From the sequence record MK250029.1: a DNA stretch of 64,000 nucleotides; one strand, given 5' to 3'. The notes beneath the pieces were generated by a model. That model searched no databases and was not told where the DNA came from. It saw only the letters and a list, made by a program, of their open reading frames with translations. A program made the translations under genes and the position numbers. This document shows positions 3,804 through 25,459 of the stretch, piece by piece; positions within the stretch are counted from its first letter, which is position 1, and each line of letters opens with the position of its first letter.

Positions 3804-4604
3804 TTACTTTCCATAGTGGATGTAATCAATAAGTGCATTTGTATCAAGATTAGACTCAATTGCCTCCTGATCGTTAACTTCCTTAAGAGCTGCAATAACA
3901 GCCTTAAGCAACTTACTACGACGAGCAAGAAGGTCTGCACGCTGCTTCTGTGACCACTCACCAGTAAAACGCTGATGTGTATAATCACCAACCTCAACTG
4001 TCTTCTTACGCTGAACAACTGCTGCACGATAGTTTGCAGGAATATTAGCAGGGTCGATATTAGGATCTCGAAGAATTTCCTCAGTTGTTTCTGTTGTACG
4101 AGAAACACCCTTTACAAGTTCATTCTCAAGAATTTCACGATTACCATATTCTGCATTATTTGTAGGTTTCCAAATTTCAGAATCTGAATAAACAGGGATT
4201 CTCTCATACATTGTTACGAGTTCTTTTGATGTAAGAATACTCTTAAGACGCATAAGATCAAGAGCTGTCAACTCACCGAATGAATGGCCATCTACAACAA
4301 GCTCAACCTTACGAGCACCCATAGAGTTTGTAGCCTCAACAGAGAATACCTCATTAAGATAATTTGTTGCAATATTCTTAAACCAATCAAGCTGTTCTGA
4401 TACAGTTGTCTGAACTGCTGTTACACCCTTCTTTGTAGGATCATCTGGATAACCCTCACGTGGGATATATGTCTTCTTCTCTCCGCGGAATGCGCCCTGT
4501 GCATTCTTAAAATACTGTGCATACTCATTTACCTCTTTTGCATACACTGATGCAGAATGATCGACCTTTGCAAGGACGACATTCATCTTTTCTACTTTTG
4601 CCAT
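3804..4604 (-). CDS. hypothetical protein (266 aa, largely helical)
   Basis: ATG to TAA, TAG-free, higher GC and codon usage like the capsid gene. Family not confidently recognised. Confidence 0.85.
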   Translation of the reverse strand: MAKVEKMNVVLAKVDHSASVYAKEVNEYAQYFKNAQGAFRGEKKTYIPREGYPDDPTKKGVTAVQTTVSEQLDWFKNIATNYLNEVFSVEATNSMGARKVELVVDGHSFGELTALDLMRLKSILTSKELVTMYERIPVYSDSEIWKPTNNAEYGNREILENELVKGVSRTTETTEEILRDPNIDPANIPANYRAAVVQRKKTVEVGDYTHQRFTGEWSQKQRADLLARRSKLLKAVIAALKEVNDQEAIESNLDTNALIDYIHYGK

Positions 4605-7525: not shown

Positions 7526-8002
7526 TCAGAATAATGCATCACATTTATTCTCTTTTATCGGACACCAATTTTCATAATCCCATTTGAAAAAATCTGTACA
7601 AACGAGATTATTGTTTAATATTGATTTTGCTGTATCAACATTATAATCTATATTAAGTTTAGATAACATTTCTAATATTCGTTCATGTGTTTCAATGACA
7701 TTATCTTGAATTAGTTCTGTTCCGTATGTATGTTCTAATGCTTGTTGCCATGTTGAACCATGTTGTATCTTATTATATATTATATAGATAACGAAATTTC
7801 CATTTCCGAATGAAGGCTCTAAGAAATTTGATTCTGTATTATTCCACTGTTCTTCTGAAACTTTATCAGACATACGCTTAACTAATTCAAACGGAGTGAA
7901 AAACTCATTTGAACCATCTGTGCCTTTTCGACGAGAAACTCGCTCTTCTGTTGCATAACTATCTAAACTCAAAAACTATTCTATATCAAAACTATTATTC
8001 AT
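7526..8002 (-). CDS. small N6-adenine methyltransferase subunit carrying only the SAM-binding half (158 aa, code 15)
   Basis: ATG 8002 (MNNSFDIEQFLSLD, TAG at codon 9). Motif X EFFTP and motif I FLEPSFGNGNF are present, no NPPY. Confidence 0.8.
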
Positions 8003-8003
8003 A

Positions 8004-8441
8004 TTAACCAAATTCATTTTCTAATATTGTATTTGTATCTTTAAATATTATATCTTTTTCTAATTTTTTTAAAATAATTTTGTCAGAATCATTAAATTCA
8101 TTTATTTTATTTTTAAATGGTTGGAAAAAGAAATATGATTTTTTATTTTTTAATGATATAACATACGTATTTGATAGTTTTTTGTTATATAATTCTTCAC
8201 CACGTGTACAATTATCTGCATACCATACATGTGTTCCCTCTATTTTTATATCATTTTTAAAATCTGCAATAGTTAATTCTTTGATAATTTTATATTTATA
8301 ACCATATATTAAAAACGTTTTTGATATATACCATATACTAGATATGATAAAAGATATACTCATACATAAATGATATATAATAGTTGATTGTATAAAAAGC
8401 ATAAAATTATAATTAAAATTACAAATATCGCCATTATACAT
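8004..8441 (-). CDS. hypothetical protein with hydrophobic N-terminus (145 aa)
   Basis: ORF track. Abuts the start of the small MTase gene. Confidence 0.55.
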   Translation of the reverse strand: MYNGDICNFNYNFMLFIQSTIIYHLCMSISFIISSIWYISKTFLIYGYKYKIIKELTIADFKNDIKIEGTHVWYADNCTRGEELYNKKLSNTYVISLKNKKSYFFFQPFKNKINEFNDSDKIILKKLEKDIIFKDTNTILENEFG

Positions 8442-8675: not shown

Positions 8676-8830
8676 AGCTGTTATGTATTTAATTTGTATA
8701 TTATATGATAATCATATTATTTTGTCTTCTTTTTACTATCAATCTTTTACATATAATTTTTTACAAATTTATTAAACTAATTTAATTATATAATATATAA
8801 AGTTTGTTTTATTTATTATAAAATATATGA

Positions 8831-8860
8831 AATCCTACTAATCATAATAGACGCTATATA
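8831..8860 (+). repeat. left arm of 30-bp inverted repeat (partner 10144-10173)
   Basis: aatcctactaatcataatagacgctatata is the reverse complement of 10144-10173 at 29/30 positions (perfect 22-bp core 8839-8860). Confidence 0.9.
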
Positions 8861-9505
8861 ATTTATGATGGTAAAGAATATAATAAATGTAGTGAAATAA
8901 GTTCTACTAGCAATGATAGTTTATTATAGAACTTTAAAAATATAATAACATCGATATGTAATAAAGATAATTTAGAAAAACATATGAGAGCTATACCAGA
9001 TGATCCTCATTTAAAGAAATATTGGTATAATAATTAGAATGTAGATGAATATTGTATAAAAGTTGATTTAATAAGAGGACACGAAAATAAAAAAACAGGT
9101 TAGCATAAAGATGATTTTTATACAATAATTTCTAATAATGAAAAAACAATATTATCATCAATAGGAAATTTTAAAGATTTAATTAAAAAGAAAAATAATT
9201 TAAATAAGAGATTAATAAATTTCTATATTCCATCTATTAATTTAAATATTACAAATAATATTATAAATTATTTAAAAACAGATTTTTGTAGGGCAGGACT
9301 ATTATTCCAAAAAATTAATACAAATATGTATCCAAATGTTTTTATTTATATTCCATGGTTTGATTTTTCTAATAATATATTTAGTAAAACTCCTTCAGAA
9401 ATAGATGATTATTTATTTACTAAATATAATATATCAAATGAAATAAGAAAACATATTGAAGAATTACTTCCAGACTATTATAATATAAGAAAAGGTAGAG
9501 ATTAA
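8831..9505 (+). other. silent alternative C-terminal (target-recognition) cassette of the R-M-like enzyme, 224 codons, no in-frame start at its 5' end
   Basis: Code-15 frame NPTNHNRRYIIYDGKEYNKC...KYNISNEIRKHIEELLPDYY is paralogous to the last 223 aa of the 9502-13818 gene (NPINHNRRYILFDGKKYDKC...KYNISQDIVNHILEILPNYY). An in-frame TGA (8828-8830) lies immediately upstream. Confidence 0.8.
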
Positions 9506-9517
9506 TTCTCTACCTTT
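9491..9517. terminator. bidirectional terminator at the junction of the two convergent cassettes
   Basis: aaaggtagaga-ttaat-tctctaccttt. The loop holds the overlapping TAA stops of both cassettes (9502-9505). Confidence 0.75.
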
Positions 9518-12500
9518 ATATTTTTATATTTACTTAAATCTAAATTATAATAATTCGGTAATATTTCTAATATATGATTAACTATATCCTATGATATATT
9601 ATATTTTTTAAATAATTGTATATCTATATCTTCTGGTTGATTATTAAAAATAGAGTCACTAAAATCAAACATCGGTATTGTTTTTAATTCACCTCTAAAT
9701 AAATGTAAATTTGTCTTATTAAAATATAAACAAATTCTAACAAAATATGTCATTAAATAATGCTATAAGTTTATTATATTATCTTTATTGGTTGTATTTA
9801 TATCAATATAATATTGTAAATATTGTTTATTTGTTTTGTCTTTTTCATTAATTAAATCACAATATTTACCAATATTTTTATTTAAGTCTCCTTTATACAT
9901 TAAAGAATAAAATGATAGTTCTCCACCAATTAATGCTGTTAATCTTAATACAATATTATTAATATTTTGATGTTTATTTATTTTTTTAGGTATATCTATA
10001 TTTCCAGGTACACCAAATATATAATTCTATAAGTTATCTTTTAAATATAAAGGTTCAACAATAGATTTAAATTTCATTAATAATTCATCATTCGAATATG
10101 CCGATATTTCTTTACATTTATCATATTTCTTTCCATCGAATAATATATAGCGTCTATTATGATTAATAGGATTATTCTCTTTAAACAACTAAATAGCCAT
10201 TACACCACCAATATTAGCGTCAAAAAATTCATTACCATTTATAGATTCTATATCACTATAATCCCATGTATCTACATGTTTAACAATATCCTTCTTCTAT
10301 TGTTTACCTAATAACCATGTACTAGGCTATACAGTACAAATTTCACTTCCTATTTCAAAATATTTTGCTAACATCTTATTAGCCAAATTATATGGTGGGT
10401 TACTCAATATAACATCAAATTTCTTTCCCTAATTCATCTTAATTATATCTTCATTTTTCATCTCAAGAAAATCCTTAACATCGTAAAAACCATTTCCGTC
10501 AATGTCATTTATCTTCATAATTATACTTTCCGGAAGCTATAAAGTCTTTAAAATCTTTCTAATAAAATTAATAGTCAATTCACTACTTGGAACTATCTTA
10601 CATTTCTTACAAACTTCAATTCCATAATCATTATATAACTATATAAAGAATTCACATACCTTTTCATTCACCAATAAAATACTATCCGCATTCTATACAT
10701 CTTCACGACTCAACTTCTTTACCATCTTACTAGTCAAACTAACAGGCGTTATAACTTCACTCTTATCTAATTTACCTAACTTACTAATAGCATTCTATAC
10801 TCTCTATATCGCAGAAATATTCTTATCATCCAATAAACACTTCAACTGATATATCAACATATTAATCTACATTATTTCCGCATCATTCATACGGCTAATA
10901 ATATCAGATAACTCATCAACATCAATCTTAAAATCCTTAGCAATCTGTTCACACTCTGAATCACTACATACCAATTCTATATAATTCATTATATCCTCAG
11001 GAATGTTATTCATACAGATACAACTATACAAAACAGACTTTAACATAGTCGTAAACTTCTTTTTCATAGTCTCTAATTCTGCCTTATCCTTCTTATCAGC
11101 TTTACTAACATTTCCAGACTTTTCCTATGCTTTATCTACAGCAGAATCAAATCCCTTATCATCAACAGGTAATTCATCACTTCCTTCTTTCTGTTCTAAC
11201 TTTGTCTAATTCAATAATCCTTCAGACCATCTCTAAATATATTTCATATTATCTAAATTATCCAAAAAAGAATTAAACTATTTCAAATCAATAGAATCTT
11301 CAATACTTCTTTCACGATTATACTTAACATATTGTTTCAATAAATCATCTGCTGTAATCTCATGAATTCCATTCAATATATGCTTTCCATTAGTATCATA
11401 TACACTGTCTACATATGTAGGAACCTGTTCAATACTCTTATTGATAAGCTCTTTAACTTCTTCAATATTATGTTTCTTATCTTTATCTGCACCACACTGT
11501 GAAACAGCAGAATTTACCATCATATTATACATTCGATCAACCTTAAAATCAATCAAATATACATTAGCCTTCCTACAAATTTTCTGTTTCTGTTCAACAC
11601 CATTTTCATCTGTATAAGTAGCATTACCTACATTTCTTGTACATAATCTGAATATTGCCTGATCATATTCCTATGGTGAAGCTGTATCTTTCATATAAAA
11701 CATTGCATCCCATAAAGGAACACTAACACCAGTTAAAAATCTGTTTACTGTAATAGTTAAAGATCTCTTTCCTTTATTCTCTAAACTCCATAATGCCTGA
11801 TTTAATGATGTAGAATCAGTCGCTTCAGGATCTAATTTTCTTGCATCTTTATCTTTTGCAGTTCTTCTTTCTGTCGCTACAATAATCTTTCTATATTCAT
11901 CTGATTCCGGATCATCATCGATAATATTTTTATCAATTAATAACTTTTTCAAAACATGACAATCATCAATATGTGGAAGAACCATTATAATATGCTTAAA
12001 TATTTCACCTTCCTTAATTCTTTTCTAATCTAAGAAACCTGGCATTTTATGATTATTCGCACCGAATATAGATTCCATTAATTCTGTAACAGCAGATTCA
12101 TTTTCAAACTTATCATTTGAATTTTTAAATAAAAATGATAATGATGTATTAATATCCTTATTTTTACTTAATACTTTTCTACATTCCTTTGTTAAATTCA
12201 TACCGAATTTAATCATATTAGGAATACCAAAATAAGGAGATTTACTTTCATCAAAATTATCATCATTAATATGCTCATCTACCCATTTATCACGCGCATC
12301 AATCATATCAGAGAATCCAACATTAGAAATGATTTCCTTATTCTTATAAATTTCAGAAAATTCTCCGCTTGCTAATATATAATATGGTGTACCAGAACAC
12401 TGTAATGTATACTTATGCTTTATTTCATCAACAGCTTTAGATATACGATCAACATCTTCAGCTTCTTTCTTTGCTTCTTTTAATTCTGTACTATTAGCTT

Positions 12501-13818
12501 CATATTTATTTTTTGCTAAACCTACAGCAGTTCCATATACATTTGAATGTGAACCATAATGAGTTTCATCTATAATAATCATATCTAATGGATATTCATC
12601 ATTATATAAGAATTTATGTTTATCTTTAATTACATTTGCATCAAATCCTTTCTTACCGGCAAGATCCTGTAAAGTTGCAAATACAATTACAGTTTTTCCT
12701 TCATCTATATACTGTTTTATCTTATTAGGATTTTCTTTCTTTACTTCTTCATATACACCCTTTTGGTTTTTCTTTGATATAGTTAAACTTCCGTCTGATG
12801 GTAATTCAATAAATACAAAATTATCCAAGAAATCTTCATGATTAATATCATCTTTCCATGCAGCTCTTACATCCGCTTTCGCAGAGGTAACTAATACATA
12901 TTTAATATCAGGCGCTTCTTTAATAATTTCATAACAACAATGAGTCTTTCCAAATCTCATAACAGCACTTAACAATAAATCTGTACATCCTCTCTTCATT
13001 GCATCAATAGCTTTGTTAATTGCATCCTGCTATAATGGAGTATTTTCATATGTATCAGCTGCACCATATTCATGATGTGTAGTTTCCTAATGAGTTTCTA
13101 AATCATATAGTTTACCTACATTCTTACCTTCTTTAATATCATTTTTAATTTCTGTTATAATATCAGTAATAATCTTTTCATTTAATTCTGATGATGTATC
13201 CTTTATTTTCATATCTTTATATTTCATAAAGAATTCAGATGATACATGAATATTTTCAATACCATCTTCTTTTGCTAATCTCTTAAATTCATCAAAATCA
13301 AATTTATTTGCAGGATCTTTTAAATTAGAATAACCATAACTACGTGTACGCGCATGAACATTAAAATCCATAAAGAAAACTTTATGCATTGCATTATCTA
13401 ACTATGTAGCAGTCCACCATCCTATTAATTTAGCATCACTATAATACTTCTGCCATTGTTTAACACGCTATTCAGCACCCTGAACGGTATAACCGATCTT
13501 AATGGCATTAGGCGCATATTTTGTAATAAACGCATAAATAATAGGTGTATTAGTCTGTAACAATTCTTCTTTAGAAAATGTCTGTCCTTTATGAATTTTA
13601 TCCAATTCAGACTACATACCTAAATGATTCTGATAATCATTATTTAATATATCATCAGAATCATTGTCTGTATCAGATTCATCATTAGTCTAATCATTAT
13701 TCTAATTTAATTCATCCTATTTCTATCTGATACTTTCATCAAAATTATTTGACATATCTTCATTTAATGATATAATATCCATATATGTCTATATAAGTTT
13801 AACTATATAACTCTTCAT
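9502..13818 (-). CDS. single-chain restriction-modification-like enzyme: GIY-YIG/T5orf172-type nuclease + SF2 helicase + m6A methyltransferase (NPPY) + C-terminal TRD (1438 aa, code 15)
   Basis: One frame from ATG 13818 to TAA 9502 interrupted only by TAG, joining track ORFs 13087, 12025, 11671, 11278 and 10867. Motifs: PIIYAFIT...IKIGYT, Walker A-like AVMRFGKT, DETH, FLTGVSVPLWD, SEVITP, ILSNPPY. Confidence 0.85.
10144..10173 (-). repeat. right arm of 30-bp inverted repeat, inside the R-M gene
   Basis: tatatagcgtctattatgattaataggatt. Encodes NPINHNRRYI, in register with the left arm NPTNHNRRYI. Confidence 0.9.
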
Positions 13819-13820
13819 AT

Positions 13821-14288
13821 TTAAAGGAATATTTTTACAATATCACATGCTAATCCTTCTCTATCTTCAACAGGAATATAATTATAAATGATATAATTAA
13901 ACATTACACTTTTAGAATATTCTTTCTTTTTCTTACTCTTATACATCATCAAATCATAAACCTGATTTTCATTCAGATAATCATCAATAAGCCAATCCAC
14001 AACATTATCTATATCATCTTTCTTAAGAAAAGTAACAATAATATCAAAATAAGTTCCGTTCAACTCAATAGCCCTATTCGCAAATGAACTAAATCTTCCA
14101 AAATTCCTTTTCCTATAATCTTCAATAGATAAAGCTCCTTCACCTGTTAATATCCTACCTGCAACATATCTTCTAATAGCCTTACTGGAATCTTTAATAA
14201 GCTTGCACATCGTTGAACCATCATCATTGGTATCTATAAGTTTCTGAACCCTCTTAAAATCTTTATTCTCAACTTCTGTATAAACCAT
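13821..14288 (-). CDS. hypothetical protein (155 aa)
   Basis: ORF track. Stop lies 2 nt before the R-M gene start. Confidence 0.75.
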   Translation of the reverse strand: MVYTEVENKDFKRVQKLIDTNDDGSTMCKLIKDSSKAIRRYVAGRILTGEGALSIEDYRKRNFGRFSSFANRAIELNGTYFDIIVTFLKKDDIDNVVDWLIDDYLNENQVYDLMMYKSKKKKEYSKSVMFNYIIYNYIPVEDREGLACDIVKIFL

Positions 14289-14437
14289 AATTATAAAATC
14301 TTTATTAGTTAAACAAAAATTAGCATATGAAAATTCATATTATTTATTAATAGAATTTTATATGTCTAATATATCATTATTTTATATAGTATAATAATTA
14401 AAAAGTCAATATATAAATAAAGAAAAATATTTTATAT

Positions 14438-15382
14438 ATGATAAAGAAACATCCGGGATTAATAGGTTTACCAAGACCGTCATTTATGAGTAGAACACAT
14501 ATATGTGAATATCACGATAAATTATATGAAATATCAAGAATAATATATAATATAAAAGAATACACAATAGACTTTAGTTTTACATTCAAATATATAACAT
14601 CATTTATTAAAGAAATAAATATTATATTATCTCATGAAGATATTAATAAAATAAAAAATATACAAATTAATAAAAATGAACATATAATTGATACATGTAC
14701 AATTTATATAAGTAAAGAATATATGTTTAATAAAGATTATATATAGGAAACAATATTAGAAAAATTAATATATGCATTTTCTATTTTATTAAAAAATGAT
14801 ACAAATATTGATGATAATACAAAAGAAGAATATTTATATAATCTTTTATATAGAGGCGATATTGATTTTAAACAAATTAGTAAATTATTTTATTATAGAG
14901 TTGATATATTAAATATATTAGGAAATTTATTAAATTATATATGTGAAGATAGTTATAAATTTAGTGATTATTTATATGGTTCAATACGTTATATACATAA
15001 AAGATATAATGATATAGATAATATTAAAATGTTAAGAAGAAAATATACATATCATGAAATAAAGAAATTAATGGATGATGAAGTTTCAATTAGAATAAAT
15101 GCTATTAAGCGAGAATATAAACAAATATATGATTATATTAATTATATAAATGAACCAAATATTTTTTCGACTTTATATCATTGGGATGAAGAATTAGAAG
15201 ATATTTATAAAATAATATATAATGTAGAAAACACAAAAGAATTTATAAATTATATTAAAAATAGAATAGATATATTTTTAAATAAAACATTACCAGATAT
15301 TCCAATTAAAGAATATGAAAAATCTAATTTAAAGAAATTATTTGATAAATTTGAATATAAAAAGGTTGAATATTACACATAA
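14438..15382 (+). CDS. hypothetical protein (314 aa, code 15)
   Basis: Track ORFs 14438 and 15029 are one frame joined through TAG 14744. Confidence 0.7.
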
Positions 15383-17473: not shown

Positions 17474-18079
17474 ATGAAATATGTAAGTGCAAAAGAAGCA
17501 AAGAAATATTTTTAGATTTCAGGTTAGACATTGAAGGTATGGAAAGATACTAATAAAATTTTAACTAAACAATTTTCATAGAAAAAAATTTTATATGATA
17601 TTGATTCAGTAAATAATGATAATAATATTACAAATACCAGGAAGAATGTAATATATGCAAGAGTTTCATGTAGTAATTAGAAATAGTCATTAGATAATTA
17701 GATTGAATTAATTAAATCATATATGATTTCTAATGGTATTAAAGTAGATGATATATATTCAGAAATATCATCAGGTTTAAATGAAGATAGAAAAGAATTA
17801 GCTAGATTAATTCATGATATTGATAATGAACAAATTAATAAAGTATATATATCATTTAAAGATAGATTAACACGATTTGGATTTAATTATTTTAAAACCA
17901 TGTTTGAAAATCATGGTACAGAAATTATTGTATTAGATGATAATGAAGATACAAATAAAGACTATAAAACAGAATTAGTTGAAGATTTAATTTCTATTAT
18001 ACACAATTATTATACTAAATTATATTCTAATAGAAGAAAAGAATTAAAAGAAATAGAAAAAATTTTAAAAAATGAGTAA
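17474..18079 (+). CDS. tnpA: IS607-family transposase TnpA (HTH + serine recombinase; 201 aa, code 15)
   Basis: ATG 17474 MKYVSAKEAKKYF, catalytic region VIYARVS, SEISSGLNEDRK, KDRLTRFGF. Six TAG in the first 83 codons. Confidence 0.9.
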
Positions 18080-18130: not shown

Positions 18131-19480
18131 ATGCAAGTATTGAAGATTAAATATCAAACAGATAAAGAATCATTAGATATTATACGGAATTATATGAGAC
18201 AATATAGTTCTGTATAGCATTTTGTATATAATAGGATATAGGAAGGTAAATTATAGAAAGATATAAAACAATAGATTAAGTTATTAAATAATGTAGATTT
18301 ATTAGATAGTTGGTTTGTTTAGTGTAGTTTTTATAATATACCTAAAGTTGATAAAGTAATATTTGGTGGAAAGAAGAATTATTTTTAGAGATTAAAAAAT
18401 AATATATCTAAAGAACAGTTTAAATAGAAACGTTTATCCCCTATATATTCAATAGGTGAAGTTATAAACAAATCTGTTAAAGGAAATAGAAAATTTCATA
18501 TAGAACAAGACTTAGAAAATATTATCTTTAAACCTAATAAATTAACTAAAATAAATTTACAACTTATTGGTTTAAATAAACGAAAGTAGATGTTATCTAA
18601 ATTATATTAGAAACAAGAAAGAAAAGAAATAAAAATAGCTTATAAATTAGATTTAGAATATATCTATATAATATTTGAAGAAACTGATATTTATAATTAT
18701 GAAACAAAATTTATAAAAAATAGAGTTCTTGCATTAGATTTAAATCCAAATTATATTGGATGGTCTATAGTTGATTGGAAATCTGAGAGTGAATTTGATG
18801 TTATTAAATCAGGTGTTTATTCAATTAAAAAATTGAATGACATAGATTTTGGTTTAAAAAATAAAGGATATAGTTCAGAATCTAATGAAAGAAAATATAT
18901 TTCTGTTAAAAGAAATTATGAGACTTTACAAATTGTAAAGAATATAGTGAATAAATCTATATATTACAAATGTCAGATTATATCTATTGAAGATTTAAAT
19001 ATTAAATCAAGTGATAAAGAATTAGGTAAACGATTTAATAAGTTAGTAAATAATTCATGGTGTAGAAATGCATTTGTGAATAATTTAACTAAAAGATGTA
19101 ATATTCATAATATTAAATTATTGAAAGTGAAACCTGAATATTCTAGTTTTATAGGAAATTTCTTATATAGAAGTTTAAATTTACCGGATATGATATTAGC
19201 TTCAATAGAAATAGGAAGACGCGGATATGAGTTTTATAATCAATATATAAGTAAAGTAAAAGAAATTAAAAAGAATATAGTAAGACCGAATTTAAGTATA
19301 TTTCAAAAGTTGTATCTTAAGTCGTTGGAAGAATTTAATTTACAGCCGATATACAAGGATTTGATTGAATTATATTACTTCTTCAAAAAGTCGAAACTTA
19401 AATATCGACTTTCTATAGATTCATTCAATCTATAGTTTTCTAGCTTTTATTCGAATACAAGTTTAATTGTATTTATATAA
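18131..19480 (+). CDS. tnpB: TnpB-like RuvC nuclease, copy 1 (449 aa, code 15)
   Basis: ATG 18131 MQVLKIKY to TAA 19478-19480 through 10 TAG. RuvC-I LALDLNP, RuvC-II ISIEDL, VKPEYSSFIG, LPDMILAS. No C-terminal zinc finger. Confidence 0.85.
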
Positions 19481-19557: not shown

Positions 19558-21174
19558 TTGGATATATTAAAGAAGAAAACTTCTTTTTTAGATGAACATA
19601 ATCCTTCTAATCCAGAACGTGTATATTGCTGGTATAATAATATAACAGAAATTCAGAAATGTCCTCATTGTGGAAAATCCAGAAAATTTCATAAATTTAC
19701 ATATGGATATTTTCCTACATGTGGTTCAAAAGAATGTCGTGCAAAATCCGTTGTATATGGAAATAAGTTTAATCATAATTTTGTAGAAATACAAAAGAAA
19801 ATGAGAGAAACATATGCAAAAAACCATAATGGTTATACGCATAATATGCAAGATCCAGAATTTAAAAAGAAGTTTTTTGATGAGTTTAAAAAGAAACATA
19901 ATGGTATATCATGTGGTGTTCAGACTGATTTAGCAAAACAAAACAGAGAGAACACAACATTAGAAAAATATGGTTGTAAATATGCTTTATCATCTAAAGA
20001 TGTAAGAGATAAAATATATGAAAAATATGGTGATGATGCAAAAATTAAATTTGCAAAAATCGCTACTGATACACGGAAAGAAAATACATTAAATGACATT
20101 ATTAAAAAGATTGAAGAATTAAATTATACATATATTTCAAATAATAATAATTTATTTAAAATTAAATGTAATAAATGTGGACATATAAATGAAATTACAA
20201 GACAAGCAATAAACTATTACTATAGGAATAGTAATCATATATATTGTAATAAGTGTGAATATAAAGAATTAACATATAGGAGTAATTTTGAAAAAGATGT
20301 TGTTAAAGAAATAGGAAATATTATAAAAGAAACTAACTATTCTATTATAACAAATAAACATATTTATAATGGTAAAGAACATTTTGAAGTTGATATATTG
20401 ATTCCTGAGTTAAATTTAGCAATAGACTGNNNNNNNNNNNNNNNNNNNNNNNNNNNNNNNNNNNNNNNNNNNNNNNNNNNNNNNNNNNNNNNNNNNNNNN
20501 NNNNNNNNNNNNNNNNNNNNNNNNNNNNNNNNNNNNNNNNNNNNNNNNATGATATTTATAAGAAAGACATTATATTAAGTCGTTTATCTAGTAAATTAAA
20601 ATTAAATAAACATATATATGCAAGAAAATGTTTAATTAAAGAATTGACTCCTAAATTATATAGGGATTTCTGTAATGAAAATCATTTACATGGATCTGTT
20701 AATGCTTCAATAAAAGTAGGATTATTTTTTAATGATGAGTTAGTTGAAATAATAGGTTTAGGTAAATCTCGTAAATTAATTGGTAATAATAAAGAAGAAG
20801 TTTCATATGAATTATTACGTTTATGTACAAAGAAATATATTAACGTTATAGGTGGTTTTTCTAAATTAATGAATTATGTTATTAATAAATTTAATATAAA
20901 TTCAATATATAGTTATGCAGATTTATCTTGGATAGATTTAAAAGGAACATCATACATTAATAGTGGATTTTATATAGATAAAGTTATTGATAATGAATAT
21001 TGGTGGGTTGTAAACAATATACGAGAGAATCGATTGAATTATACAAAGAGTAAATTGGTATCATTAGGGTATGATAAGCATTTAACAGAAATTGAAATAA
21101 TGCATTCTTTAAAGTATTATAGAATATTTGGTCCTGGAAATTTAAAATTTATATATAAAAAGAAAAGTCTCTAA
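19558..21174 (+). CDS. Hef-like homing endonuclease (zinc ribbon + PD-(D/E)xK-like nuclease + GNAT-like C-terminal domain); start uncertain, contains assembly gap
   Basis: KCPHCG...TCGSKEC, T-LEKYG repeat, EVDILIPELNLAID, YARKCLIKE...NHLHG...YELLRLC...GGFSKL. TTG start is provisional. Confidence 0.7.
   Translation: MDILKKKTSFLDEHNPSNPERVYCWYNNITEIQKCPHCGKSRKFHKFTYGYFPTCGSKECRAKSVVYGNKFNHNFVEIQKKMRETYAKNHNGYTHNMQDPEFKKKFFDEFKKKHNGISCGVQTDLAKQNRENTTLEKYGCKYALSSKDVRDKIYEKYGDDAKIKFAKIATDTRKENTLNDIIKKIEELNYTYISNNNNLFKIKCNKCGHINEITRQAINYYYRNSNHIYCNKCEYKELTYRSNFEKDVVKEIGNIIKETNYSIITNKHIYNGKEHFEVDILIPELNLAIDXXXXXXXXXXXXXXXXXXXXXXXXXXXXXXXXXXXXXXXXXDIYKKDIILSRLSSKLKLNKHIYARKCLIKELTPKLYRDFCNENHLHGSVNASIKVGLFFNDELVEIIGLGKSRKLIGNNKEEVSYELLRLCTKKYINVIGGFSKLMNYVINKFNINSIYSYADLSWIDLKGTSYINSGFYIDKVIDNEYWWVVNNIRENRLNYTKSKLVSLGYDKHLTEIEIMHSLKYYRIFGPGNLKFIYKKKSL
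20430..20548. other. assembly gap (119 N)
   Basis: Run of N inside the endonuclease gene, right after the LAID motif. Confidence 0.98.
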
Positions 21175-24580: not shown

Positions 24581-25459
24581 TTATCTATAATTATTTCGAC
24601 CTTTATAATAACCAATATTTTTATAAAATTCTATTTTACTATCATCTATTAATACATTATCTACTCCATTTGTATACCAATGCATTCCATTTGTTGTTTT
24701 ATATTGTTTCCCCTACTTTGCTTTTAAAGAATTATCTATTGATTTCTATGAAGGACCTTTTATATATCCCTATATTAAATACTAATCTAATTCATTTGGA
24801 TCAATATATTTATTTTTATTATCTTTATGTATACAAATTTTTCCTTTTTTGCTATTTTTTATTTTCTCACAAATGTCTTCAGAACGTTTAATACCATAAT
24901 AAGGAGAATCCTCTCCTGATAATTTTCCTTTCATTATATTTCTCATATGCTATTTATATTCTTCAGTATGGTGTTTACCATATCGATTATTACGTTCACC
25001 TGCATTTATATGTTCAACTTCTCCATTTATATATCTTTCATCATCTTTAGAGCAAATAAATATTTCATTTGTTTTAGGATCTATTACAACTACATGATTA
25101 TTTAATGGTGCATTACCACCTAAACAAAGATTATAATTATTATTATCTTTTATAAAGTCCTCAGTAACTAATTCTGATTCTTTACTTAATAATTCAGTTC
25201 TATCATTAAAAAACTATAATATGTATTTTATAAAATTATTATCTCCATATTTTTCATATGCTTCATTTAATGCTAATCCTGAACCTGAATAATTATCATT
25301 AATATTTTTTGTAGAATGAATACCTATATAAATTTTATTATTTACTTTATTATATATTTTATATAAATAATGGTAAAAATTATCATTTCCTACAAAAACA
25401 TTATTTGTCTAATATATTGTTTCTAATTTTCTAAATCGGTATTTTCTATAATCTTTCAT
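24581..25459 (-). CDS. GIY-YIG (Seg-like) homing endonuclease with NUMOD3-type repeats (292 aa, code 15)
   Basis: Missing from the track. YLYKIYNKVNNKIYIGIHSTKNINDNYSGSG, YNLCLGG, RYGKHHTEEYK, PYYGIKRSEDICEKIKNSKKG. Confidence 0.85.

Follow-up and report, generated by a model that had tools for sequence, protein, structure and literature searches.

An invertible cassette for the predicted DNA-recognition domain of a restriction-modification-like enzyme in a Lak-type megaphage

Inversion of coding segments is a known means of altering specificity in bacteria. Gene-altering programmed inversions are documented for bacterial single-chain Type II/IIG restriction-modification (R-M) enzymes, Eco57I-domain methylases and BREX PglX, where in-frame inverted repeats inside a methyltransferase-containing gene swap a specificity-determining part for a silent paralogous copy, and where nested repeats and multi-cassette versions also exist (Milman et al., 2023, PMC9881135). 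Those cases are chromosomal loci of bacteria, and in that survey recombinase and invertase genes were strongly enriched next to predicted inversion targets. In the Type I hsdS shufflons of Streptococcus pneumoniae (SpnIII/ivr), Bacteroides fragilis and Mycoplasma pulmonis, TRD-coding cassettes are inverted between an expressed and a silent copy, which results in alternative methylomes within one lineage, but a separate S subunit with two TRDs is rearranged, usually by an adjacent tyrosine recombinase (PMC7672463, PMC7641763). Phages, in turn, possess inversion systems for tail fibers, i.e., the Gin/G segment of Mu and the Cin/C segment of P1, in which the C-terminal, specificity-determining part of a protein is exchanged for an alternative copy encoded on the opposite strand. 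These switch the host-receptor specificity of a structural protein and use an adjacent serine invertase with defined sites.

Here, we describe a locus of a lytic-type megaphage in which the TRD is the C-terminal domain of the catalytic polypeptide itself, the gene is TAG-recoded, and no linked recombinase is evident. An earlier note, based on the sequence alone, had proposed that inversion of a 1.34-kb segment fuses one catalytic body to either of two TRDs, and stated that no megaphage example was known. Our literature searches found none either, and our analysis confirms the observation and supports the interpretation, although a change in specificity remains an inference.

Organization of the locus

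The analyzed stretch of DNA (64,000 nt of record MK250029.1, hereafter the window) belongs to a Lak-type megaphage with 26% GC. Reading TAG as a residue raised the summed length of long ORFs from 12,634 to 20,286 aa and opened the single ORF of the enzyme, P0001. The window's own protein lies on a 540,217-nt contig, a mate in its 90% cluster is named Lak_Megaphage_RVC_AP1_GC26/Vetruanivirus porcinprimi, and relatives lie on contigs of 531-553 kb. The features of the locus are collected in Table 1.

Table 1. Coordinates of the features of the switch locus in the 64-kb window.
Feature	Coordinates	Strand	Remarks
Gene for the single-chain enzyme P0001	9502..13818	-	1438 aa; 29 in-frame TAG codons read as a residue
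T5orf172 domain (GIY-YIG clan), putative nuclease module	13381..13542	-	residues 93-146; PF10544, 22.9 bits (cut-off 20)
SF2 helicase-like ATPase (ResIII)	12508..13044	-	residues 259-437; PF04851, E 6.6e-8
Catalytic domain of a gamma-class N6-adenine DNA methyltransferase (predicted)	10174..10683	-	residues about 1046-1215; NPPY at 10390-10401
Right (body-side) arm of the inverted repeat, 30-nt core	10144..10173	-	encodes NPINHNRRYI; weaker arm extends inward to 10105
Active target-recognition cassette (predicted)	9505..10173	-	residues 1216-1438 of the enzyme, 223 aa
Two-way terminator hairpin (predicted)	9491..9517		11-bp stem; both stop codons overlap in its TTAA loop (9502-9505)
Silent target-recognition cassette (predicted)	8831..9505	+	224 codons, no start codon; opens directly after TGA 8828-8830, stop TAA 9503-9505
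Left arm of the inverted repeat, 30-nt core	8831..8860	+	encodes NPTNHNRRYI; weaker arm extends inward to 8899
Exactly shared 22-nt core	8839..8860		TAATCATAATAGACGCTATATA; partner at 10144-10165

The two extended arms comprise 69 nt each and are 84% complementary, while the 30-nt core matches at 29 of 30 positions. This core occurs exactly twice in the window, and no match was found in 100 dinucleotide-preserving shuffles (chance expectation 0.00). Both arms are read in the same codon register, and DNA similarity between the two cassettes starts sharply at the outer edge of the repeat. The plus-strand cassette is 39% identical (E 2e-46) to the C-terminal end of the enzyme. The note had further claimed conserved ends and a divergent middle of the cassettes, which holds only partly. 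It is seen between the two cassettes of the window, but across the family only the C-terminal third is conserved, with mean pairwise identities of 0.36, 0.32 and 0.67 for the first 45, the middle 100 and the last 79 residues, respectively. The hairpin shared by the convergent cassettes scores as a terminator on both strands, with folding z-scores of -5.0 and -3.4.

We considered whether the apparently silent cassette might be expressed on its own. It could start at ATG 8984 (codon 52) to give 173 aa. In relatives, it could be a 320-aa protein containing NPPY that pairs with the neighboring small gene for an N-terminal-half methyltransferase, thus acting as a separate or split methyltransferase or as a modulator. 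Indeed, the long cassettes of the related loci L002 and L006 begin with ATG and include NPPY, and a conserved gene of 158-163 aa carrying methyltransferase motifs X and I lies beside the locus in all relatives. However, the cassette of the window starts directly after a stop codon, lacks NPPY and has no start before codon 52, the upstream ends of the silent frames show no conserved start in five loci, and the same cassettes are found as in-frame ends of full-length enzymes (see below). We regard independent expression as very unlikely.

The flipped arrangement in L004 and recurrence in relatives

The predicted alternative fusion exists in nature. A 46-kb Logan contig (L004) encodes a 1439-aa enzyme, P0132, in which the same body (98.5% identical over residues 1080-1215) is joined to the window's silent cassette (98.7%). 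Window positions 8831-10162 match L004 7646-8977 on the plus strand at 99.6% identity, whereas window positions 10019-14454 match L004 7800-3363 on the minus strand at 98.1%, i.e., the segment is inverted relative to the body. The exchange is reciprocal, as the window's active cassette sits in the silent position of L004 at 99.5% identity. In an alignment of the junction, L004 keeps the body-side flank and the body-side T variant and continues with plus-cassette sequence right after the core; the crossover which produced the L004 form must lie within the 22 nt. Thus, both states exist in public metagenomes, although the plus-active state is represented by this single contig, whereas the window's orientation has 15 sequences in its cluster. 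Switching may therefore be rare, or one state may be favored.

An assembly artifact at a short inverted repeat could mimic this result, with the window's locus being fixed in one orientation. L004 is a k=31 contig, the repeat core has 30 nt, and the contig ends inside the far arm, so that its second junction is not seen. On the other hand, a unitig-based assembler does not cross an ambiguous repeat node, and if the arms differ at position 8, as in the window, we infer that the 31-mers joining the body-side T variant to plus-cassette sequence must come from reads. Furthermore, independent assemblies made with larger k show the same kind of difference (related loci L002 against L007 and L005 against L008), and L002 also carries the window's body-attached piece in inverted orientation. 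An artifact is, in our view, highly improbable.

The architecture recurs in six other related loci (L002, L004, L005, L008, L009 and L010), down to about 60% body identity. L002, L005, L008, L009 and L010 each have a convergent start-less cassette whose stop overlaps the stop of the enzyme. The convergent cassette of L004 overlaps in the same way, but is cut by the contig end inside the repeat. Each has a repeat of 42-121 nt at 96-100% identity, which lies at the boundary between catalytic domain and TRD in L005, L008, L009 and L010. In L002, the strong outer pair lies just before NPPY, and a weaker inner pair (64 nt, 83%) lies at the boundary. Silent cassettes were found to be active elsewhere: the inner silent cassette of L002 equals the active cassette of P0125, the enzyme of L007, at 100%; the silent cassette of L005 matches the active cassette of the proteins P0128-130 at 98% and that of L008 at 93% nucleotide identity in inverted orientation; and the silent cassette of L009 matches the active cassette of P0129 at 94%. 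Three bodies which are 98-99% identical (window, L004, L007) carry three different active cassettes, and 96 cassette sequences fall into 52 types at 70% identity. The window appears to hold the minimal version. Relatives appear to carry three or more cassettes with nested repeats that also swap the second half of the methyltransferase domain, such as those in L002 and L006. An exact search of IMG/VR with a 20-nt part of the core found nothing, and a search of IMG/VR with the family alignment found only distant, single-cassette relatives without inverted repeats. The nearest genome record, a 76%-complete fragment, lacks the module.

Assembled contigs of four runs were also inspected. In one run, a whole contig spans exactly 8833-10171, and in the three other studies contigs break at the right arm. 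No flipped junction was listed among these contigs; since assembled contigs drop rare variants, this is only weak evidence against switching. Conversely, we do not rely on the contig breaks as proof of mixed orientation, because strain mixtures and near-k-length repeats can cause the same breaks.

Predicted function of the exchanged domain

The enzyme has the domain order T5orf172, SF2 helicase, gamma N6-adenine methyltransferase and TRD. The PADLOC profile PDLC03626 (REase_MTase_IIG, Type IIG restriction enzyme-methyltransferase) matches residues 91-1118 at E 9.6e-85, covering profile positions 21-979 of 1359, while the C-terminal part of the profile is not matched. The T5orf172 domain is only marginally above the cut-off of Pfam, and the Pfam Eco57I match is below its cut-off (22.1 against 25.3 bits). 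In NPP[Y/F] the Asn and the second Pro are invariant, and the DF motif and an acidic motif II are conserved in the 29 full-length members. However, motif I of the methyltransferase is degenerate (LLVNEKVCEF, or EVNSKYGEF in relatives), so activity is not certain.

Residues 1040-1438 were modeled with AlphaFold (pLDDT 93). In a fold search, the catalytic-domain-only methyltransferases KsgA and HsdM align to model residues 1 to 177-204 and stop at the start of the cassette, whereas M.TaqI (Z 14.2), LlaBIII (Z 13.9), DrdV and CamA align through it. The silent cassette modeled alone has a pLDDT of 93.2. With Foldseek, no match of the cassette alone reached E 0.001, but an exhaustive search of 48,161 chains gave 17 matches at Z 2 or more, 15 of which are DNA methyltransferase or R-M proteins. 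Where the matched range is interpretable, it is the C-terminal or specificity part. The best are CamA (Z 7.3), M.BseCI (7.1), PglX (6.2), BpuSI (5.7), MmeI (4.1) and TaqI (4.0). The models and searches place the boundary at the end of the catalytic domain, which supports the cassette being a TaqI/CamA/Type ISP-like target-recognition domain.

The domain order corresponds to that of the Type ISP enzymes LlaGI and LlaBIII (PDB 5ffj, 4xqk; nuclease, SF2 ATPase, gamma N6A methyltransferase, C-terminal TRD), which are among the best structural matches for the methyltransferase-TRD part (Z 14.5 and 13.9). Nevertheless, no sequence-level family match to Type ISP was found. Type ISP enzymes probably carry an Mrr-like PD-(D/E)xK nuclease, but the N-terminal module scores as T5orf172 here, and no Mrr or PD-(D/E)xK family was hit.

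Possible mechanism and biological meaning

Based on these results, we conclude with good confidence that the locus is a two-cassette inversion switch for the DNA-recognition domain of a phage-encoded, single-chain, restriction-modification-like enzyme, although reversible switching within one population is not shown. Recombination within the shared core inverts the segment and puts the other TRD in frame behind the unchanged body. We infer that the two fusions recognize different DNA sequences; a phage population would then carry alternative methylation specificities and, if the T5orf172 and helicase parts are active, alternative cleavage specificities.

No dedicated invertase was found next to the switch within the 64-kb window. 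The only recombinase there is an IS607-family transposase (168.7 bits, cut-off 110) in a 2-kb block, which is absent from the related locus L001 and was not found beside the locus in L004 or L007. A neighboring 314-aa protein (14438..15382) has no family match and is absent from L001, L004 and L007. The complete genome of L001 has no Phage_integrase or Resolvase match, but it also lacks the switch, making this result uninformative. Further, the repeats differ in length (30 to 121 nt) and exact position between relatives and share no common core sequence, and the arms are kept near-identical within each genome. Thus, the exchange is most likely driven by homology, using the phage's own recombination machinery; RecA/RadA is a core gene of Lak phages (PMC8346664).

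Alternatively, the spare cassette could be a reservoir used only occasionally over evolutionary time, with diversity arising mainly by homologous recombination or gene conversion between co-infecting strains rather than by a programmed, frequent, reversible inversion within one genome. In favor of this, in addition to the lack of a linked invertase, the skewed orientations and the lack of a flipped joint among the assembled contigs of the four runs, a cassette unit is 100% identical over 838 nt between strains whose bodies are only 96.8% identical; exchange of cassettes between genomes therefore also happens. L001 even carries a wholly different methyltransferase-TRD module on the same body, which is a replacement rather than an inversion. 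However, the window and L004 differ by a precise, reciprocal inversion with the breakpoint in the core, the start-less, convergent, in-frame design with a shared terminator is conserved, and one run has the segment as a separate contig bounded by the arms. Moreover, the arms are kept 96-100% identical while the cassettes behind them have diverged to about 40-50%, which indicates ongoing exchange between the arms. We therefore consider the reservoir explanation unlikely.

A more far-reaching possibility, which we put forward only tentatively, is that Lak megaphages run a recombinase-independent diversity generator for DNA recognition. Short in-frame repeats at domain boundaries would let the homologous-recombination machinery of the phage shuffle a pool of dozens of TRD cassettes, and in some strains half-methyltransferase modules as well, behind one helicase-nuclease-methyltransferase body during replication, and each burst would release progeny with different methylation or restriction specificities. 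This viral counterpart of bacterial phase-variable R-M systems could serve to pre-empt the varied R-M systems of Prevotella hosts or to exclude competing phages.

Specificity switching by inversion is regarded as a bacterial bet-hedging device, used for defense and for epigenetic regulation. Finding the same device in a huge lytic-type phage would show that viruses also diversify the DNA-recognition end of a modification/restriction enzyme, and the apparent absence of a dedicated invertase would make it a case of homology-driven programmed variation. The locus also offers a natural library of TRDs grafted onto one constant body at a defined junction (NPINHNRRYI), which could be useful for studying or engineering recognition specificity. 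The finding bears on how megaphages cope with the many and variable R-M systems of their hosts, and on how they compete with other phages.

Inverted repeat and paralogous cassettes

The window is AT-rich (26% GC) and reads sensibly only when TAG is treated as a sense codon, in which case the long-ORF content rises from 12,634 to 20,286 aa and a single 1438-aa ORF with 29 in-frame TAG codons appears on the minus strand. This gene can be translated only where TAG is decoded; no tRNA gene was found in the window. A repeat search detected an inverted repeat with arms of 69 nt (84%), whose 30-nt core, AATCCTA[C/T]TAATCATAATAGACGCTATATA, occurs exactly twice in the 64 kb and was not matched in 100 shuffled sequences. 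On the plus strand, a frame opens directly after a TGA and reads NPTNHNRRYIIYDGKEYNK... for 224 codons, with its first ATG at codon 52. It is 39% identical (E 2e-46) to residues 1216-1438 of the enzyme, which start NPINHNRRYILFDGKKYDK in the same codon register. DNA similarity begins abruptly at the outer edge of the repeat. The two stop codons overlap in TTAA, in the loop of an 11-bp hairpin which scores as a terminator on both strands. The elements described in the earlier note are therefore confirmed, although its conserved ends and divergent middle hold only partly, since among 96 cassettes (52 types at 70% identity) the first two thirds are variable (32–36% mean identity) and only the last third is conserved (67%).

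Coordinates of the features in the window and in related loci
Feature	Sequence	Position	Strand
Conserved gene for the N-terminal half of a gamma methyltransferase	window	7526..8017	minus
	L002	6419..6895	
	L006	170..673 and 4213..4557	
Stretch of 787 nt, an insertion relative to L002 and L005	window	8008-8794	
Gene in this stretch, 145 aa	window	8004..8441	minus
TGA preceding the silent cassette	window	8828-8830	plus
Inverted repeat, arms	window	8831-8899 and 10105-10173	
Silent cassette, start of the frame	window	8831	plus
Terminator hairpin	window	9491-9517	both
Overlapping stop codons	window	9502-9505	
Gene of the 1438-aa enzyme	window	9502..13818	minus
Exchange of methyltransferase-TRD modules	window	about 10727-10835	
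	L001	6001-10401	
IS607-family element	window	17430-19453	
Gene of the TnpA serine recombinase	window	17474..18079	plus
ORF with weak TnpB/Cas12-like matches, 449 aa	window	18131..19480	plus
Run of 119 N inside ORF 19558..21174	window	20430-20548	
GIY-YIG homing-endonuclease-like genes	window	24581..25459	minus
	L002	5362..6234	minus

Predicted domains of the enzyme and its cassettes

PADLOC places residues 91-1118 of the enzyme in the family ‘Type IIG restriction enzyme-methyltransferase’ (PDLC03626, E 9.6e-85), while Pfam finds a T5orf172 domain (GIY-YIG clan; 22.9 bits against a cut-off of 20) at residues 93-146 and ResIII at residues 259-437. An AlphaFold model of residues 1040-1438, built on 110 homologs, is confident (pLDDT 93, pTM 0.85). 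Using Foldseek, it was matched to gamma-class N6-adenine DNA methyltransferases with C-terminal recognition domains, namely CamA, M.TaqI, M.BseCI and BREX PglX, and a second structural alignment ranked the Type ISP enzyme LlaGI (Z 14.5), M.TaqI (14.2), DrdV (14.1) and LlaBIII (13.9) at the top. Methyltransferases consisting of the catalytic domain only (KsgA, Erm, HsdM) align to model residues 1 to about 177-204, whereas TaqI, LlaBIII, DrdV and CamA continue to about 350-369. Since the cassette starts at model residue 177, the repeat sits at the boundary between the catalytic domain and the recognition domain.

A separate model of the silent cassette alone is also confident (pLDDT 93.2). In an exhaustive comparison with 48,161 chains, only 17 reach Z 2, of which 15 are DNA methyltransferase or R-M proteins. 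Where the matched range is interpretable, it is the C-terminal or specificity part: CamA (320-577, Z 7.3), M.BseCI (298-576, Z 7.1), PglX (550-941, Z 6.2), BpuSI (577-863, Z 5.7), MmeI (618-892, Z 4.1) and TaqI (243-413, Z 4.0). Several HsdS subunits and the LlaBIII TRD also appear. The Z-scores are modest, but the list is very one-sided. In the catalytic motif NPP[Y/F], the Asn and the second Pro are invariant across 110 sequences, and the DF motif and an acidic motif II are conserved in the 29 full-length members. Motif I, however, is degenerate.

The conserved gene of 158-167 aa beside the locus encodes only the N-terminal half of a gamma methyltransferase (FFTP and EPSFGNGNF, motifs X and I) and stops just before where NPPY would be. 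It is present in every relative, including L001, which has no switch. In L002 and L006 the long spare cassettes have their own ATG and carry NPPY, so that a split methyltransferase is conceivable. In L002, one of the GIY-YIG homing-endonuclease-like genes is inserted next to the half-methyltransferase gene and shares its C-terminal tail (...CDALF / ...CEALF); the copy in the window has GIY-YIG and NUMOD3 matches. Further, one ORF of at least 100 aa in the window matches Pfam Lar_restr_allev (restriction alleviation protein Lar, E 3.6e-6), which may be relevant to the phage’s dealings with host restriction.

Orientation of the segment in metagenomes and related loci

The cassette has a large family in metagenomes (156 hits). 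One member is P0132, a 1439-aa protein from a 46-kb Logan contig (L004). Its residues 1080-1215 are 98.5% identical to the body of the window’s enzyme, but its residues 1216-1439 are the silent cassette of the window at 98.7%. On L004, window 8831-10162 aligns at 99.6% in one orientation, while window 10019-14454 aligns at 98.1% in the other, and the convergent cassette is the window’s active one at 99.5%. The two genomes therefore differ by a reciprocal inversion of exactly the segment bounded by the repeats. L004 keeps the body-side flank and the body-side T at repeat position 8, and carries plus-cassette sequence immediately after the shared 22-nt core; consequently, the crossover lies within TAATCATAATAGACGCTATATA. 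Misassembly was considered as an alternative. However, a unitig-based assembly with k=31 does not cross an ambiguous repeat node and, if the arms differ as they do in the window, the joining 31-mers must come from reads, although this is an inference rather than a check of the reads themselves.

Four further relatives have a start-less convergent cassette whose stop overlaps that of the enzyme, and a repeat at the catalytic-domain/TRD boundary: L005 (repeat of 121 nt, 99.2%; silent cassette of 242 aa), L008 on a 550-kb contig (69 nt, 95.7%; 232 aa), L009 (42 nt, 100%; 209 aa) and L010 (50 nt, 100%; 222 aa). Their bodies are down to about 60% identical to that of the window. The locus L002, on a 434-kb scaffold, is larger and holds three cassettes plus a tail remnant. 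Its outer repeat (95 nt exact, 108 nt at 96%) lies just before NPPY, with an inner NHNRRYI repeat nested within it, and the window’s body-attached half-methyltransferase (10019-10494) lies there in the opposite orientation. L006 holds an array of three long cassettes. In contrast, L001 has no spare cassette and carries a different methyltransferase-TRD module from residue about 1030 onward, reading MNPPYGAKGEKDLHY... at that point. Contigs of all four metagenomic runs examined have loose ends at this boundary, which is a second, coarser level of module exchange between strains sharing the same body.

Silent cassettes recur as active ends elsewhere. The inner silent cassette of L002 equals the active cassette of protein P0125 at locus L007 at 100%. 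That of L005 matches the active cassette of proteins P0128-130 at 98% and the active cassette of L008 at 93% nucleotide identity in inverted orientation, and that of L009 matches the active cassette of P0129 at 94%. The window, L004 and L007 have bodies 98–99% identical but three different active cassettes.

Among the assembled Logan contigs of the four runs (X1, X3, X5 and X15), no joint between the two arms on opposite strands is listed. Nevertheless, one whole contig of X3 lies exactly on 8833-10171, two contigs of X15 overlap by exactly 30 nt at the right arm, and contigs of X1 and X5 also end there. This fits a segment sitting in more than one context within a sample. On the other hand, strain mixtures could give the same picture, and these breaks are consistent with mixed orientation but do not prove it. 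Some contigs of X5 join 9390 to 9634 and 9257 to 10026 on opposite strands, and skip 8900 to 9348 with unknown sequence between; these are probably further cassette variants or chimeras with conserved ends. The 787-nt insertion next to the locus, holding a gene without any family match, is skipped by contigs of X3 and X5, with 12 other letters in its place. The window’s orientation is the commonly assembled one, as its cluster holds 15 sequences against 1 for the plus-active form.

Recombination and known inversion systems

The only recombinase in the window is the TnpA of an IS607-family element (NF033518, 168.7 bits against a cut-off of 110). It is followed by a weak TnpB-like ORF (E 0.0016), and both lie in a 2-kb block that L001 lacks. 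It is therefore a passenger and not a partner of the switch. Both genes contain TAG sense codons (6 and 10), so the element seems adapted to the recoded genome. The repeats differ in length and position between relatives, and the NPINHNRRYI arm of the window and the IIFDGKKYSKCEEI arm of L009 share essentially no sequence. Within each genome, however, the arms are near-identical. This pattern fits homology-driven exchange and gene conversion better than a fixed recombinase site, and RecA/RadA is a core gene of Lak phages (PMC8346664). An unlinked site-specific recombinase is not excluded, since no complete genome bearing the shufflon could be searched.

Gene-altering programmed inversions, including nested designs, were confirmed in bacterial Type II/IIG-like R-M enzymes, Eco57I-domain methylases, N6 methylases and BREX PglX by Milman et al. 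2023 (PMC9881135), whose phage cases are prophage tail fibers only. Type I hsdS shufflons are the classical relatives (PMC7672463, PMC7641763). No description of the present locus was found in literature searches for megaphage or Lak phage together with inversion, restriction or methyltransferase, and two Lak genome papers mention none of these terms. The enzyme has the domain order of Type ISP enzymes, but its N-terminal module is T5orf172 rather than Mrr-like.

Based on these results, we conclude that the locus is very probably an invertible TRD switch in a Lak-megaphage R-M-like enzyme, which exists in both states in nature and whose design is conserved across relatives. This supports the interpretation in the earlier note that inversion fuses the same catalytic body to either TRD, while the change of specificity, any restriction activity, reversible switching within one population and its frequency, and the recombination machinery are inferred. 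Compared with the inversions already known, the switch is distinguished by its phage host, the recoded gene, and the absence of a linked invertase.
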